A stretch of DNA of 64,000 nt from Saccostrea cucullata. Taxonomy: Eukaryota. The stretch's first letter is position 1, and each line of letters starts with the position of its first letter. The translations under genes and the position numbers were made by a program. Of this stretch, positions 5,911 to 31,169 are shown one piece after another. Below the pieces are notes generated by a model. That model saw only the letters and a list, made by a program, of their open reading frames with translations, did no database searches and was not told the origin of the DNA. The stretch spans positions 434,001 to 498,000 of the forward strand of contig NW_026933217.1 of the NCBI RefSeq assembly GCF_032062105.1, written 5' to 3'.

Positions 5911-6187
5911 ATGTATACTGTTAATAATTATTTCTTCTGAGGGGATTTGTGTCATTTGACAAACCAAATATGTAATATAAAGGATGACTGCACTTAACGC
6001 CGGTTTTTGGGTCTTTTTCAATCTCTGTTGTCACATTTATTTTTGTTTTTATTTTGTCAGAATCATTTGTGTTAGAGTTTGGTCTATTTAAGAAATAAGG
6101 TAATTTTTGATTTCGGGATATAAAAGACGTCACACACAATAAACGAAGGGCTTGTGATGAAAATCGTGGACAAGTAAACATCACTAT

Positions 6188-6495
6188 TTATAGCTGAAAG
6201 ATGTTTTAAAATGATACCTTATTACTTATATTTACATTTGTGACTTATTCATACTTTATATTTACCTGATTGTGACTTTAAGCGTGTGAAATGCGTTATT
6301 TTTCAAACTCAACGGCAAGTATGTAATCCACTGAACGCGCGTCGACCCTTTATGACGTCACTGAGAAATTACGTCAAACGATTATCCATACGCACATCTA
6401 TGACCTCTTGACCCCGTACCTGTATTCATACAGTTATAGATACGCATTCCTTTTGGTAGTGTTATATAAAGGAAAACATTTGCAAATGTAAATAT
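6188..6495 (-). mobile_element. Hairpin cassette, family A, copy lacking most of its hairpin
   Basis: About 300 bp, closely matching the reverse complement of 7220-7525, e.g. CCACTGAACGCGCGTCGACCCTTTATGACGTCACTGAGAAATTACGTC. Confidence 0.8.
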
Positions 6496-6704
6496 TTCCA
6501 AATGAAATGCAATGTCATAAAGGTTATAAACTGCGTTGCAATAAAATAATTCGTTGTTTCCTTACCCCACCTCTCTGCAAATATCGGGAAATCAGATTTA
6601 TCTGCCCTTGAATGAAGATAAGATTTATAAATATGCATAAGAGGTGGAGCTAATATTGTTATGAGTTGTCTAAAATTAGAATAGTTAGTGTATTTATATT
6701 TAGT

Positions 6705-6705
<1 letters not shown>

Positions 6706-6754
<49 letters not shown>
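6706..6754. repeat. (CT)n microsatellite
   Basis: About 24 perfect CT units. Confidence 0.95.
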
Positions 6755-6757
<3 letters not shown>

Positions 6758-7219
6758 ATATGTTTGTCACTTTTATCTTTTAAGTTTTCAAATAAAGTAT
6801 ATAACTAATAACAAATAATACCGGCCGGTAAAAGTAGTCATTCTTATTGATAATCAAAAGCATTGGCTGATGTCAACAATTTGCGTGTTCGAGCTCAGAC
6901 TAATGCACAGTACAGAATCAATTATATTCAGATCCGGGATCGAGACCCGCAAACAGCAGTAAGACTAATTTTATTTTTCCTTTTTATAAAAAAGAAAGAA
7001 AAACATCACACTTACTTTTTTTTTTTTTTTTAAAAATAGTTTCTTTTATAATTACTTTTCCGTATAAATTAGCGAGCTGGGGAATTTCAATTTTATTTAC
7101 TGGATCTTACTTTAGATGTTCATATTAAACAATGGTTCAAAACATATACATATAAATGAATCTTTTTCTTCATATGAAGACTATGAACATGTAGAGACAT
7201 ATAATGCACTCAAAAATAT

Positions 7220-7650
7220 ATATTTACATTTGCAAATGTTTTCCTTTATATAACACTACTGAAAGGAATGCGTATCTACAACTGTATAAATACAGGTACG
7301 GGGTCAAGAGGTCATAGATGTGCTTATGGATAAACGTTCGACGTAATTTCTCAGTGACGTCATAAAGGGTCGACGCGCGTTCAGTGGATCACATAGGCCG
7401 TTGGGTTTGAAAAATAATGCATTTCACATGTTAAAAGTCACAATCAGGCAAATTTAAAGTATGAATTAGTCACAAATGGAAATATAAGTAATAAGGTATC
7501 ATTTTAAAACATCTATCGGGCTATAAATACGGGTCGGTACGAGATTAAATTCAACATAAAGCCCTTCGGGCTTTATGGAATTTAATCTCGTGACCGACCC
7601 GTATTTATATCCCGATAGATGTTTAAAAATGATACCTTATTTCTTAAATA
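7220..7650 (+). mobile_element. Hairpin cassette, family A, complete: short sub-terminal inverted repeat plus ~163-bp palindrome
   Basis: Starts ATATTTACATTTGCAAATGT, with the inverted partner CAAATGGAAATAT at ~7473-7485. Palindrome 7485-7647 is centred on CATAAAGCCC-TTC-GGGCTTTATG. Confidence 0.8.
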
Positions 7651-8026
7651 TTTACATCCACTGAATATTTTCTTCTTTATTTCTTAAGAAAACCCATTGC
7701 GTTCATCACTGCATAAACTACATTAGGCACATCACCTGTACAGATTTCTTTATCAGTGGCCGTTCCATCAATGAAACGTACAAAGACGTTCGCATTATTA
7801 ACACAATAATTAATATTTTTGATCCTAATTAAAATGGTAATTTAAACAGATATAAATATAAACAATAAAATGTCTTTCTTTGTTTGTTATTACTGGAATG
7901 AACGGTCGCAGCTATTGCAGAAAAATTCACATAACCCGCTTACGCGGGTTATGTATTTTTTCTGCAACAGCTGCTTCCGTTCATTCCAGTAACAACAAAC
8001 AAAGAAAGCATTTTATTGTTTAAATA
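7648..8026 (+). mobile_element. Hairpin cassette, family B, joined head-to-tail to family A
   Basis: ATATTTACATC...GATATAAATAT, then a ~165-bp palindrome (7859-8023): TAAACAATAAAATG...CATAACCCGC-TTAC-GCGGGTTATG...CATTTTATTGTTTA. Confidence 0.75.
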
Positions 8027-11000
8027 AAGATAGTAAAATGAAATGATTTTGAGATAAATATAAGAATAATCTTATAGATATCCAAGAGAAAAAAGAATAG
8101 CCCGTGCTCGATGGGAATGAATTGAAACAGATATCTGATATGGACAATCACTATCGCCCAACAGAATGCGTGTTTCCTTACACGTCACGTGATGGAATTT
8201 AAGTATTCGCAGAGTTACCTGGGTATAGAAATCGCGTGGTTAATTAATATTATTCAACAGGTAACAACGTGGTCAAAATGGCCTGTTTACTATAGAGAAA
8301 GTGAACACACGAGAAACAGTTTATTCTCTTTTTAACCATGAGCGCATGTTTGTCTATTGATCTCCTTTTGATATGAGGTAATTTATATAAATATACAACT
8401 ACCATAAAAAGGAGAACAATAGACAAACATGCGCTGACTATGCATTAAGCCTGTAAAAAGCTGGACATACTCATTATCCTATGGAGATTCCAGAATATGC
8501 GATGACCCCTCCCTACAAAAACGACTTCGAACTTTGTTAATACGAACTTTTAATTAACGTAATTACACAAAGTTGCAGTTAAGAAATTTACCATTTCTAC
8601 CATTAAAAATAAAATGCCCATCTTTAAAATTGATTATGTCGCAATTTTTGAGTTTCTTTAAGTGCAGTCATCCTTTATTAAAAAGCAATTAGCATTATTT
8701 CTTTAGGTATTTATTTGTTAATCGATTGTCGTAAGAAGACGTGAATTTGATTTCATTAAAGACGTCACACAATTTATGTGCTATTTACATCACCTTTTCT
8801 CATCCTATATTTGCTGTATTCATGTAGATCTTAAGACGTCACACCTAATTGATGTGCTAATTATCACACTACAGCTCATCTTGTAAAACTCTAATGCTCA
8901 ATTTTATCTTGCCATTTAATTTCATATAATCAAATATATCAAATAGTTATCAAGTTCAAAAATATATGTCTTGGATAGAATTTAAAACAAGGATGTAAGA
9001 GAATGCACGTGGTTAATAATTCTGGAAATATTTGTCAGAGACTCTTTGTATCTCGTGGCATGCCTGGGGCCATACAGGGAGGTCAAAAGTTATATGACCG
9101 CCATGGAAGTTAACTAAACCAAGTGTAGATCTATATATATCTTTAACAGAATTTTTTAAGAAATCAGAGACAAATTCCCTGATCTACAAACAAAAGTTAG
9201 CTGAAGAAAAAATGGTATAAAAATCATACAGTCGAGATCTACACAGATGGTTCAAAAGACAACAATAAAGTTGCGTCAGCTACTGTAATGAATTAAAAAT
9301 AATGTATTAAACATATGAATATCTACTGAGTTTCAACAAGGACTGGAGAAGACATCTTATATATAAGGAGTCCTATAGTGATACATACAGCTGTAAGTAC
9401 TGCAGACTATTACGAGTGTGGAGGTCGTTCAGAAAAAAATGGTCATGCATCTCTATCAATGGCGAAATGATATCTAGTCATTCCTTGATATCTCAAAAGT
9501 GCATATATAATTGGCTGCTACATGTACCTATGTACACCTGTAAACAACCTGCATGGCTGTTTTAGAATTCGTGAATTCATTCACATAAGATTTTCTTTTG
9601 AAAAGTTCATAAAATTCAGCAAATGGGGCATGGCGCGTCAAAGTCGTATCACCTCCATGAAACATATTAAATTATAATCATGATACAGTAATGTCAAGTC
9701 AGATTGATGCAAAGGATCAAATCGACCGCAAACAGAATTTAATTTTGCATTTCAAAAAGCAATTTCACAATTTTAAAAACATCCATGCAAACAAAGCACA
9801 AGATATTCAAAGCTGAAATAGTGATCATTTTTATTTCAGACTGTCTTCAGAGCAAACTAAATAAATAATTTCTTTAAAAATTAAAAGTTTGGTGCATTTA
9901 CTCATCAGATTCATCGATGTTATGAAGTCAATGATAAGAATTTGTTGAACATGTTGAAATCAAAATGAATTTTTGGGCCTCGCCGCCTCTCAAGATGAAC
10001 CACGTGTTGATACCCCGGATCATTGTCGCGTGATAATATCCATGGTTTCTACACACTTGGTGCTGCAAGGTGCGTTGCAAAATGTAAAATAAAATTATAT
10101 ATCCTTGTCATTCGCAGCTGTTACATAAGCATATTCAAAACAATTTTTACTACTTGGACAACTTTTCAAATTTTATTCACTAACGCATTAAATATCACGT
10201 CATTATTATCCGGAAAATCATGACAATTCCCTTTCGTATCTTAAACACTCCCAGGCTGAGGATTCCTTATTGTAAACTCTTTTTATTTAAGGAATGAATT
10301 AAATAGCAACCCAAATTATACTAAATATATACATGTAACCTGGGTTGGGGCAGTTTTTTTTATCCAATCAAATGACGCGTTACAACCAAAATTAAATTAT
10401 TTAACTATAAATCATCAATTATCTGATAAGAAATGATTAAGAAATTGAAACATGATAACAACAATCAATATTTAGTACTATAAAGCAAGTTTTTAAAATA
10501 TTTTACTCATGATTTTATATATGAAAAATCAATCAAGAATTATTTTAAGTTCAAAAAAAAGTTTCATTTCCCCATGTGCACTTTCTAGCACAACCAGTCC
10601 ACAAATAGATCGCTGCTGCGGTCGATATCATATAAAGTTCACTTAGTATACTATCAAATTCCTCTATCAGTACTTTTAGTACTTTGATGGCATGTCCTTC
10701 GGAACTCGCAACGCAGTTTCTTCGTAGGAAGGCAATCAAGGAAAACCGAATGTTAAATACACAGAGAAAATTCGATTTTTATGAGTGTAAACAAAATAGA
10801 CCAAGCTGATGGTTCTAAAGTAAGTCTTTAAATCAGGTAAGATTTTCTTGGAAATGAATTTGCTATCAAGAAATCTTCATATTCCACTGGGCCTGATATT
10901 TTATCAGAAATGTCCTTGCTCAAAATATTTACCACAAGCCTCTGAATGCATGCATATCACATGGCCAGGAGGGTGACTGACCTAACAGAATATATTCGTC

Positions 11001-27642: not shown

Positions 27643-30600
27643 ATGTGTGACAAATCCCAAAACCCAGAGAAGGAACAGAGAACAAATAGCTGTGGAGAAA
27701 GGGATCAACGTCCTGTCTTGAATGGGACTTATGGTCAAATTTTGAAGAGATTTCAAGAAGTTGTCAATGCCCAAAGAACTGGTGGTAATGAAAAACAGTA
27801 TAAGGTGGTTATACTTCGACCAAAACCAAGTGGAAATTTGGGAAGCCCCCAAGCGGTCCCAAAGCACAAAGTTAACATTAAAACCTATCAAACCTTGGCA
27901 GCCTTTTCAAATAGCAGTTTACCTCAAACTTTTTCATCAGTTACATCTGATGGTGAACATGTTCCATCATCTGCCCCTGACATCAAATCTGAGATTAAAT
28001 GTGAAGATAGTCAGACAATGGCAAGCTTTTCAAACAGCAATTTACCTCAAACCCTTTCATCACTTACATCTGATGGTGTACATGTTTTGCCATCTGTTTC
28101 AGACATTAAATCCGAGATTTGTGAAGACGACCAAGAACCGTCAAAGATCGCTTCAGGCTCGTGTTATGATACACAAATTAATTCTCAGAATTATCAAACA
28201 TTTCAGATCTTCCGCACCTCTACATCAGGAGAAGGAATATCACCAGTTTCCCAAGAGATAAAATCAGAGGTTTGCGAAACCGATGTATCATCTGCATTAT
28301 ATTCACAGTCTGCACCTGTGCCATGCAGAGAGCTGCAGAGAGATTTTCAAAATTGTATGCAATCTGGCCCACCACCATATTTCTCTCACTACATATCTAC
28401 ACCCCAAGTCTCTACAATTTCTGAGGCTGTCAAGTCTGAGCCTAGTGAAGAGAATCTAGAATCTGCTCAGATCACAGAGTTTTCAACTGTTAAGCAAGAG
28501 TGTGCTTCAGAGGACTTTATCTCAAATGATAAATCTGTAGATGTCCTGCAAGATATCTATAGTGGAAAAGAAGACCCAGAAATGCTTAAAGAAATCAAAA
28601 CTGAGGTTTATATTGAGAATTTAGAGTTTTCATCACATTTAGAAACTTCTTCTGTATCATCCAAAGAAAAAGGAAGACTCTTTGCAGAAAACTATTCCCT
28701 TGCTGCTGATTTCAATTCCCACAGCTCTTTCAACATACCTGAAGAAAATAGACCAGAAACTGGTTCAACAAGTAGAGTAATCAAAGATGAGGACTACTCT
28801 GTATTTAATCAATCATCACAGATCCAAACTGCAGAATGCAGAAGTTCATCAAATGAGTTGTTACCGACTGAACATCTTGTTCCTGTAACATTTATACCTA
28901 CTATTGTTGATCAAAAAGAATCTGGTCAAATACGTGGACAAGCTATGGTAAGATTTTTCATTTATAATACAATATTTTGGAATAAACGCCCCTCTCTCCA
29001 AGCATTGTTTGATAATTTGAGAAAACATATTCTAAGCCCTTTCCAAGCTTACTTTATTTGATCACGCAGAACTAGCAATCTTTCATATTTATTTAATATT
29101 TTTACATTAACCATGTTAACAGCAGTTTTTCATGGTCCAGTGATTGAAATATGAATAGAATTTCTAGTATTATTAAAGAAATATTTTTTTTATTCATATG
29201 GAGGCCTACAAACTTGACTGCATACTTGCATTGATAAAAAAGCTTTTAAAATATCTTTAATATTACTTTAATCCAATAAATTGAATATTTTCATTTGCAG
29301 GATTCAACCAACAGGCAACCAATAAGCAATGCCTTAAATGAATTCATGCTGACTGGAAAGTTTTTTAAATGTGGATTTTGTGATGCCGCATACAAGGAAT
29401 TGGATGAATTGAGGGAGCATTTTAGGACCAATCACAACCAAATATGTCTTGTTTGTGGAAAACCTGTACCCATGTTGACAGACATGCAGACTCACTTAGC
29501 CCACTGTCAACCAACGCAACAAGGACCTGTTTATGCAAATTGTCAAATATGTTCAAAGCTAGTAAGAAATAAGTCACTGGGCGTACACTATAGGGTCCAT
29601 GGACTAAGACCCCAGGACTTAATATTTAGATGTAATACATGCGGTAAGGATTTCACATTTTGGGACAGAAACCTTAATTGCATGCACTTAGATGGACAAC
29701 CTTCCACCAGCAGAAAAATGATTTTATTTTGCATTTTATGTAAAAAGGAGTTTGAGGAATTGCAACCATTTAAAGAACACTTGAAAGAAGTTCACAGAGT
29801 ATCTGGACCAGAAATGTTCCCATGCAATATATGTTCAAAGATTTACAGTCGCCAGTTTTATTTACAGAAGCACCTGGAGAATCATGAAAAAAGAAAGCAG
29901 CGCGTGCTTGAGCGAGCAAAAATACGTAAGATGGAATCGAAAAAGTTTAGCGAATATCAGAAGCGTCTAAAGGCTTTAAAGAAACAGAATAAAAGCAAGC
30001 TCAGGAGGTGTACTGTGTGCAAAAAATTGGTAATTCAAGCAGGAAATACAAGGGTAAACAACGTAACACAGGGAAAGATTTATGAGCCTAATGAGTGTTT
30101 GTCAATGCAAGCAAAGAAAGTTTTAGATCACAAAGAAAATGTTAAGCTCCAAAGCAAGGAAAATGGGAAGAAAAAGAGTGTCAGTTTTATGTGCACAAAA
30201 TGTGAAGAGCGCACTAAGCTTAAATTAACTCTGTTGAAATGTAGGATGGCCCAGAAAGTCTACAGATGTCAGATTTGTTCACAGACATTCATTAAGTTAA
30301 TTCACTTGAAATCACATATGAATAGTCATGTGTCTAGCACAGAAAAAATCTGCATTATCTGCAGGAAGGCATTTAGTCAAAACCGAAATCTTAGGCTCCA
30401 CATAAAGGGTCATGCAGACACGAATGGCTTTTCTTGTAAGTTTTGTTGTAAAAAGTTCACTTATTGTCATCAGCTTGATATTCATAGTCAGTTACATTAC
30501 AACCCAGAACTTCATTGTGATGGTTGTCACCTGGACTTTGATAAACATTACCGATTTGTTCTCCACAAGAAAAAAGATCCCATAATGCATAAAAGAAAAT

Positions 30601-31169
30601 CCTGTTCAAAGAAAAAAACTCTGCACGCTATGAATCCTGGGAATCAATCTGAATCTTTCAAGTGCGCTGTCTGCGGGAAGAAATTTAGATACAAAAAATG
30701 GTTAGACCATCACCAAATGACATTTCAGGACTTAAAGCACAAGAGATTTTGCTTTGTGTGTGGAATTATGTTCAAACTACCAACAAAAATGAGAAAACAC
30801 ATGAAAACTCACACAAAGGCACCGGAAAAATCGAGAAGGTCTTTCCTTTGCCACATCTGTGGTAGGCTTTTCAAACAAATTTCAAATATGTGGGGCCATA
30901 TAAGAGCCCACACTGTGAAAGAAATTAAAAACTCTGGGACACTAAGGCGCCCCCCTGACAGGAGTTCTGTGCACGAGTGTGGTCTGTGTGTCAGGGTGTT
31001 CTCTAAGAAAAGTTACTTGCTGATACACAAGAAGGTACACGAGAGGCCGGACACTCAAAAATGTCAAGTCTGCAACGGAGTGTTTGGTAGTCTGGGTGCC
31101 CTGAACCGCCACAAGCGTAATGTACATCAGATGTACATCAACATATCTAAGCAGATTGAATTGAAGTGA
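27643..31169 (+). CDS. Multi-C2H2 zinc-finger protein B (~1057 aa, ~14-15 fingers). Coding exons 27643-28947 and 29301-31169
   Basis: Donor ATG|GTAAGA and acceptor TTGCAG|GAT, both phase 0. Repeated CxxC-x12-H-x3-4-H motifs such as CQICSQTFIKLIHLKSHMNSH and CHICGRLFKQISNMWGHIRAH. Acidic/Ser-rich N-terminus with repeated psi-K-x-E motifs. Confidence 0.92.

Follow-up and report, generated by a model that had tools for sequence, protein, structure and literature searches.

The 64,000-nucleotide stretch of oyster DNA analysed here (the window) contains units of two repeat families, each unit ending in a long hairpin. The features discussed below are these:

7220..7647, plus strand: family-1 unit, copy A, young subfamily, 428 bp (alignment of 32 copies)
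7220..7239, plus strand: copy A 5′ inverted repeat ATATTTACATTTG (7220-7232) followed by the short IR CAAATGT (7233-7239) (sequence reading)
7473..7485, plus strand: copy A 3′ inverted repeat (consensus and whole-unit fold)
7485..7646, plus strand: copy A 3′ hairpin, 162 nt (fold and alignment)
Landmarks within the copy A hairpin: apical stem-loop at 7555-7577, with a 2-nt bulge on the left (7553-7554) and a 1-nt bulge on the right (near 7592); T/T mismatch between 7489 and 7642
7648..8023, plus strand: family-2 unit, head to tail with copy A, with its own hairpin; reads from other copies start at 7648
60041..60466, plus strand: family-1 unit, copy B, older subfamily, hairpin at 60304-60465
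6088..6495, minus strand: third family-1 copy, with head and hairpin base intact and inner hairpin scrambled

None of the window's open reading frames of at least 250 aa overlaps the elements. Elsewhere in the window we noted a 5.9-kb satellite array (53247-59099; 31-nt unit, ∼183 copies, 88–89% matches) with extreme strand asymmetry (GC skew ∼-0.5, AT skew ∼+0.49), and a region dense in short palindromes of the type TTGGGCCAACGTTGGCCCAA with many overlapping inverted repeats (22060-24790), where Tandem Repeats Finder reported no array. An open frame of 624 aa (29295-31169) has multiple C2H2 zinc fingers; open frames at 18030-19616 and 27643-29061 gave no Pfam match. A 90-nt hairpin repeat with 44-nt arms starting AATCTAATTAAAATTAGATC, found at 16697-16787 and again at L046:1268-1363, is probably another small element family.

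An earlier note on this DNA had described the hairpins of copies A and B as self-contained cassettes. The long hairpins themselves were confirmed at 7485-7646 and 60304-60465, plus one terminal A each, but homology between the two copies begins upstream of them, at 7220 and 60041; each hairpin instead forms the 3′ end module of a longer unit, ∼430 bp in all. The genome that we searched was a 1.17-Gb oyster assembly, and an alignment of 32 genomic copies placed the left edge of the unit at ATATTTACATTTGCAAATG... and its right edge at ...CCTTATTTCTTAA, so that family 1 runs from ATATTT... (5′) to ...CTTAA (3′). Most copies are 430 bp long. The 13-nt repeat at the 5′ end is followed directly by CAAATGT, yielding a 14-nt palindrome that was kept in all complete copies. 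About 250 nt downstream, the family consensus has CAAATGTAAATAT, which matches the opening 13 nt of the unit exactly as their reverse complement; the corresponding right repeat of copy A has one mismatch to the consensus complement. Right repeat and hairpin share one base, which closes the repeat and opens the hairpin, and in copies A and B alike the unit ends a single base (A) past the hairpin. Folding of the whole 430-nt unit as a single strand paired the 13-nt repeats directly against the hairpin foot in both the minimum-energy and the centroid structures, which brings the 5′ and 3′ ends of the unit side by side in the fold.

Family 1 is abundant: its 24-nt head had 900 exact matches in the genome. 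The young subfamily of copy A numbers at least 40 genomic copies that are 98–100% identical over the hairpin, while the genomic relatives of copy B, in the older subfamily, are 91–98% identical. The proposal of a mobile, non-coding element is borne out. A flip-flop (parvovirus-like) reading of the hairpin was also considered and rejected, every copy matching at 98–100% in one orientation and at ∼90% in the other.

Folded as single-stranded DNA, the hairpin of copy A had an energy of -73.1 kcal/mol (z -18.7 against dinucleotide shuffles) and that of copy B -49.1 kcal/mol (z -13.0). Comparison of the subfamily A and B consensuses revealed three conserved blocks, at the base, middle and apex of the hairpin. 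The base (21 bp per side) is identical between A and B. The middle block, ACGGGTYGG / CGTGACCRACCCGT, is near-identical, differing by one compensated pair. The apex is again identical; its 23 nt, CATAAAGCCC-TTC-GGGCTTTATG, are shared by copies A and B and absent elsewhere in the window (0 occurrences expected by chance). The A/B changes sit in the two spacer segments that each arm has between these blocks.

Four asymmetries had been listed as common to the two copies. Three of them were found at the family level: the basal T/T mismatch (7489/7642), the 1-nt right-arm bulge in CGTGACC and the 2-nt left-arm bulge beneath the apical stem were present in all four of the subgroups that we distinguished (young A, old A, B1 and B2). 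The letters of the left bulge vary by subfamily (AT or AA versus TT), but its position is constant. The fourth, a mid-stem mismatch, did not stand as a family feature; this position is paired in the subfamily-B consensus, and the mismatch is private decay of the copy B in the window. Two mismatches specific to subfamily A were kept in both its old and its young subgroup.

The differences between the arms of copies A and B had also been said to be mirrored. We aligned 67 distinct family-1 hairpins and scored the 70 pairs common to both subfamily-consensus folds. Standard pairs occupied 97.4% of cells, a level reached by none of 500 shuffles, which had 92.0%; when partners were slid by 1–3 columns, 30–47% of cells were paired. 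Pairing of the arms has thus been kept by evolution and is not a chance effect. Two-sided changes were found at 15 of the 70 base pairs. Between the A and B subfamily consensuses, 58 of the 70 pair positions were identical, 12 had two-sided differences and none had a one-sided difference, so the mirroring holds.

Because alignment cells are not independent events, we also compared the consensuses of the four subgroups. Young A and old A differed at one pair (T-A to C-G), B1 and B2 likewise at one (A-T to G-C), and A and B subgroups at 10–12 pairs; all of these fixed differences were compensatory, with no one-sided change among them. Further double changes were found in two smaller sub-lineages, at pairs 30/150 and 54/128. 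Private changes in single copies were of another kind, with 122 breaking a pair, 36 producing a wobble and 11 double. Since private changes mostly break pairs, inserted copies decay without correction, while the source lineages have always kept the stem. The combination of two-sided fixed changes with unpaired private ones bears the mark of selection exerted when an element is copied.

Divergence between the subfamilies was concentrated in the hairpin, where the A and B consensuses differed at 33 of 163 positions (20.2%), versus 14 of 268 (5.2%) outside it (Fisher p = 2e-6). This suggests either exchange of 5′ parts among old hairpin lineages, such exchange being common in Helitron-type elements, or faster turnover of the spacer stems. 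Within subfamily A the hairpin was 8.0% off consensus and the rest of the unit 5.8%. In subfamily B, among copies picked by their heads (loci L061-L120), the values were 4.5% and 12.6%, which could reflect either several 5′ variants sharing one common hairpin, or correction between the arms.

Such correction is part of an alternative account of arm complementarity, in which it arises by mutational templating, through quasi-palindrome correction during replication or mismatch repair of the folded strand during transposition. Its best argument is the low divergence of the subfamily B hairpins just described. It would also account for the two-sided nature of every fixed subgroup difference, with no one-sided intermediate ever fixed, and the excess A/B divergence of the hairpin is easier to explain if double changes arise in one step. 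However, the preponderance of pair-breaking and wobble changes over double ones among private changes shows that there is no correction in place. Templating should moreover erase mismatches and bulges, and the T/T mismatch, the 2-nt bulge and the 1-nt bulge have persisted through four subgroups, as have the two A-specific mismatches in old and young A. We consider templating an unlikely source of the complementarity.

Insertion was examined at empty sites. Public reads mapped to positions 6600-8300 yielded an allelic empty site in which 7219 is joined directly to 8024, with 3 ambiguous bases; contigs with this joint came from runs with three labels, organism A, organism B and seawater metagenome. 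The empty allele thus lacks 804 bp, made up of copy A (7220-7647) and the family-2 unit (7648-8023). For paralogous empty sites, we removed exactly ATATTT...CTTAA from fetched loci and aligned the joined flanks to the others. Nine family-1 copies lying inside other repeats gave joined flanks that aligned without gaps to empty paralogous sites (for example ...CTGAA|ATCAG..., 98.7% identity), evidence that there is no target-site duplication (TSD). The earlier observation of no clear TSD therefore extends to nine paralogous sites and one allelic site, and the comparison of filled with empty sites that had been suggested speaks for insertion without duplication and against a DDE MITE with terminal inverted repeats (TIRs) and TSD.

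The target itself is loosely defined. From 88 distinct flank pairs we derived the logo T(-10) T(-9) A(-8) W(-7), five free positions, W(-1) | R(+1) T(+2) A(+3), with A in 52 and T in 34 of the 88 at position -1. Family 1 therefore inserts 5′ of RTA and 8–10 nt 3′ of TTA. The TA at -9/-8 is also present in empty sites, so it is part of the target and not of the element. The register of insertion is ambiguous by 2 nt; it can be written as A|T for most copies, the exceptions being the 20 of 88 with G at +1. The two TA steps of the target (in TTA at -10 to -8 and RTA at +1 to +3) are about one helical turn apart, and the target resembles the joined ends of family 1 itself (...TTATTTCTTAA|ATATTT...), offset by one base.

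Precise head-to-tail dimers were found at L025, L057 (B then A) and L067, in addition to the pair of family-1 and family-2 units in the window. The unit starts with ATA, which makes the 5′ edge of a resident copy a good target and fits the occurrence of such dimers; read-through past a first 3′ end would be expected to give the same products. At L099:418-650 a subfamily-B unit is followed by an extra ∼33 nt of A-type 3′ end, that is, by two 3′ ends in a row, as expected after either end bypass or nested insertion.

The absence of TSD and the precise dimers fit rolling-circle (HUH) transposition and exclude a cut-and-paste MITE. Family 1 resembles an ordinary MITE or foldback element of a DDE transposon in being short, abundant, non-coding and AT-rich, with inverted repeats. 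Yet such elements are defined by TIRs at both outer ends and a TSD of fixed length, and family 1 has neither: its right repeat lies 162 nt inside the 3′ end, which leaves the two outer ends without inverted complementarity, and the empty sites and head-to-tail dimers point the same way. We give a DDE origin almost no credence. SINE or retroposon readings were likewise rejected, as the units have precise ends, no tail and no TSD.

The neighbour of copy A proved to belong to a separate family, with at least 40 genomic copies that are 96–97% identical over the whole query. The family-2 unit is 376 bp long and starts with the same 10-nt head, ATATTTACAT, as family 1; its right repeat (7848-7860) matches its own 5′ repeat at 10 of 13 positions. 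Its hairpin of 164 nt (7859-8022, apex 7929-7954; -75.4 kcal/mol, z -20.1) has a stem unrelated to that of family 1. A hunt for more long hairpins, by self reverse-complement BLAST of ∼470 kb of fetched loci, uncovered at least seven families besides family 1 with hairpins of 141–199 nt and unrelated stems, and in several of the long-hairpin families the hairpin abuts the ATATTTACAT head of a next unit. About six of the additional families, counting family 2, keep a common plan of base and apex: the base has the form TAAGNAAT... / ...ATTNCTTA, and the apex is a 9–13-bp stem with ATAA then G+C-rich bases, closed by a 3–4-nt loop.

Conserved bulges had been proposed to form a code. Among ∼8 families with the common base (family 1 counted once), five carry a bulge immediately beneath the apical stem, with 2–3 nt in excess on the left; in two, this place is taken by an internal loop whose excess is on the right. 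Only this small asymmetric joint recurs among families with unrelated stems, and to that extent the proposal survives. It fails for the T/T base mismatch, which was found in family 1 and just one further family, and for the right-arm bulge, whose place within the conserved middle block means that it offers no independent evidence of a structural code. Structurally, then, the families seem to have the joint under the apical stem in common, and the remaining irregularities seem family-specific. Taken alone, the apical stem-loop resembles the usual short palindrome at the 3′ end of Helitron-type elements; what is new in the family-1 end is the lower stem of 65–70 bp around it.

We also weighed whether the hairpin matters mainly as RNA, forming dsRNA from which small RNAs would be made for host regulation or for silencing of the family, with this constraint keeping the arms paired. 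Poly-A RNA-seq covers the family on both strands at ∼100-fold depth, and Rfam gave sub-threshold matches to plant miRNA precursor models (55 against a 140-bit cut-off), which show hairpin shape only. The RNA reads were, however, mostly 90–95% identical and so derive from other copies, and they were equal on the two strands, as for read-through; this coverage carries no information on a role of the hairpin as RNA. Furthermore, the hairpin sits exactly at the presumed cut site of the element, by the inverted repeat, and this placement recurs across families, pointing to a role in transposition. A primarily RNA-level function seems quite improbable to us.

Family 1 most resembles the HINE elements, non-autonomous members of the Helentron (HLE2) branch such as Drosophila DINE-1, the mite HINE-Mo and the Pacific oyster Cg_HINE, whose plan comprises inverted repeats of 12–16 nt, the 5′ one with an IR next to it and the right one followed by a stem-loop (PMC4067079, PMC7492417, PMC11417382). 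The 13-nt inverted repeats of family 1, at the 5′ end and near the 3′ end, are within that range; CAAATGT is an IR beside the 5′ repeat of the DINE-1/Cg_HINE type; and the stem-loop directly follows the right repeat. Also shared are the absence of TSD and of coding capacity, the high copy number, and subfamilies that differ in their repeats and stem-loop. There are differences as well. The family-1 hairpin measures 162 nt, versus a published palindrome of 5–10 bp in a 60-bp tail that holds both repeat and stem-loop, so the long lower stem has no documented role. The family-1 unit ends one base past the stem and has neither a microsatellite nor a central tandem repeat. Its target is TTAW-N5-W|RTA (e.g. 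GAA|ATC) and not the T|T in T-rich DNA of HLE2. The family-1 motifs had no match in the text of the Cg_HINE supplement.

Likeness to canonical Helitrons (HLE1), and in particular to Helraiser, concerns the 3′ hairpin, which in Helraiser acts as a transposition terminator. In Helraiser, swapping the stem sequence keeps ∼90% of activity, while a change in the loop is as harmful as deletion of the hairpin (PMC4778049); there too the stem sequence is free and the loop and structure matter, a result that is matched by the covariation pattern of family 1. Insertion that for most copies can be written as A|T, read-through or composite products and the logic of a circular junction are further points in common (PMC4778049). 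Unlike canonical Helitrons, family 1 lacks 5′ TC and 3′ CTRR and has inverted repeats, and its hairpin, 8 times as long, extends right to the end, whereas the HLE1 hairpin lies 11 nt (10–12 nt) upstream. Possible Helitron-Helentron intermediates have been reported from oysters in the form of ‘Helitron-like’ elements that have subTIRs and an IR (PMC7992393); they share with family 1 the host group, inverted repeats with an IR and an AT-type target, but differ in having TC...CTAG ends and hairpins of 16–20 bp.

Full-text searches of the literature yielded no description of the family-1 motifs, or of hairpins of such length in bivalves or in Helitrons; Repbase or Dfam may well already list the consensus among the Helitron-N entries for the oyster genus. 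Oyster genomes are known to be filled with non-autonomous Helentron/HLE2 elements, and family 1 belongs among these. It is a HINE variant whose terminal hairpin is several-fold longer and whose target motif differs, and not a new kind of mobile element.

Two enzymes had been named as candidate drivers, a Helitron-type HUH protein supplied in trans and a tyrosine recombinase. The first fits the terminal repeat and 3′ stem-loop, the lack of TSD, the tandem junctions, and the open reading frames for Rep, helicase and endonuclease present in the genome. At least 150 matches to the Rep domain exceeded the Pfam cut-off, many of them in open frames of 2000–2800 aa. One intact-looking frame, at L132:5196-9956 (contig C17587), combines Rep, a PIF1 helicase and an AP-type endonuclease, which identifies it as a true Helentron protein. 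At this one Helentron locus examined we saw no long hairpin and no ends matching family 1, and hence found no autonomous element with family-1 ends there; nor did any Rep match lie close to a listed family-1 copy on the same contig.

With the second candidate, a Crypton-like or attC-like tyrosine recombinase would move the hairpin as a cassette recognised by its structure. This would suit an element that has no TSD, encodes no protein and folds into an imperfect hairpin whose extrahelical bases are conserved. Integron attC sites and the hairpins of IS200/IS605 are likewise folded single strands whose unpaired bases guide an enzyme, but the likeness is one of principle only, since attC, with its R''-L''/L'-R' boxes, serves a tyrosine recombinase (the integron integrase) acting at a fixed attI, IS200/IS605 uses a bacterial Y1 HUH enzyme, and the hairpins of both are far shorter. 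In family 1 the hairpin is merely part of a unit with the HLE2 layout of inverted repeat and stem-loop, and insertions are dispersed over hundreds of sites with a loose motif, not directed to a single attachment site. Capture of this kind is thus unsupported, and we judge it very unlikely.

We conclude that the units are probably a non-autonomous rolling-circle transposon of the Helentron/HLE2 type (HINE), a reading supported by the anatomy of repeat, IR and stem-loop, the whole-unit fold, the lack of TSD, the tandem junctions, the covariation, the long hairpins of other families, the Rep-domain proteins of the genome and the parallel with Helraiser. A target other than T|T, ends other than TC...CTRR, the long lower stem and the lack of family-1 ends at the Helentron locus examined tell against it. 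The steps of transposition can be proposed by analogy. The Rep/helicase(/endonuclease) protein of an autonomous Helentron-like element in the same genome would nick the 5′ end and unwind the strand. The hairpin would stall the enzyme, as in Helraiser, with cleavage at the foot of the stem, and pairing of the 13-nt repeats within the single strand could make both cut sites adjoin at the hairpin junction. The base, middle block and apex would be read by sequence, and the two stem segments between them would need only to pair. If only units whose hairpin still folds get copied, covariation would follow.

A more specific proposal, which we hold tentatively and as a whole consider rather doubtful, is that a Helentron-like group found across oysters uses the hairpin as an end signal that is modular and coded in structure. 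It would consist of a base, middle and apex read by sequence, an asymmetric joint beneath the apical stem, and spacer stems that turn over several-fold faster than the remainder of the unit while still pairing. Such turnover could be driven by switching among cognate Rep enzymes or by escape from hairpin-derived small RNAs, and the long lower stem would set the 3′ cut site beside the paired terminal repeats.

The HINE reading has a practical side for annotation. The units are a visible share of oyster repeats and form precise chimeric dimers, and tools based on TIRs and TSDs would mis-call them as MITEs or foldback elements. To our knowledge, the way in which a Helitron-type 3′ end is recognised is known for a single element, reconstructed from a bat and bearing a hairpin of 19 bp, and we know of nothing comparable for the Helentron branch. 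The oyster genome offers thousands of copies, four or more subgroups within family 1 and a number of other families, and together these reveal which positions need sequence, which need pairing only, and which unpaired bases are kept. Their variation provides ready designs for cleavage and transposition assays. If the hairpin is indeed a modular, structure-coded end signal, the copies would amount to a deep mutational scan carried out by nature, showing which features of folded DNA are read by a eukaryotic HUH transposase.
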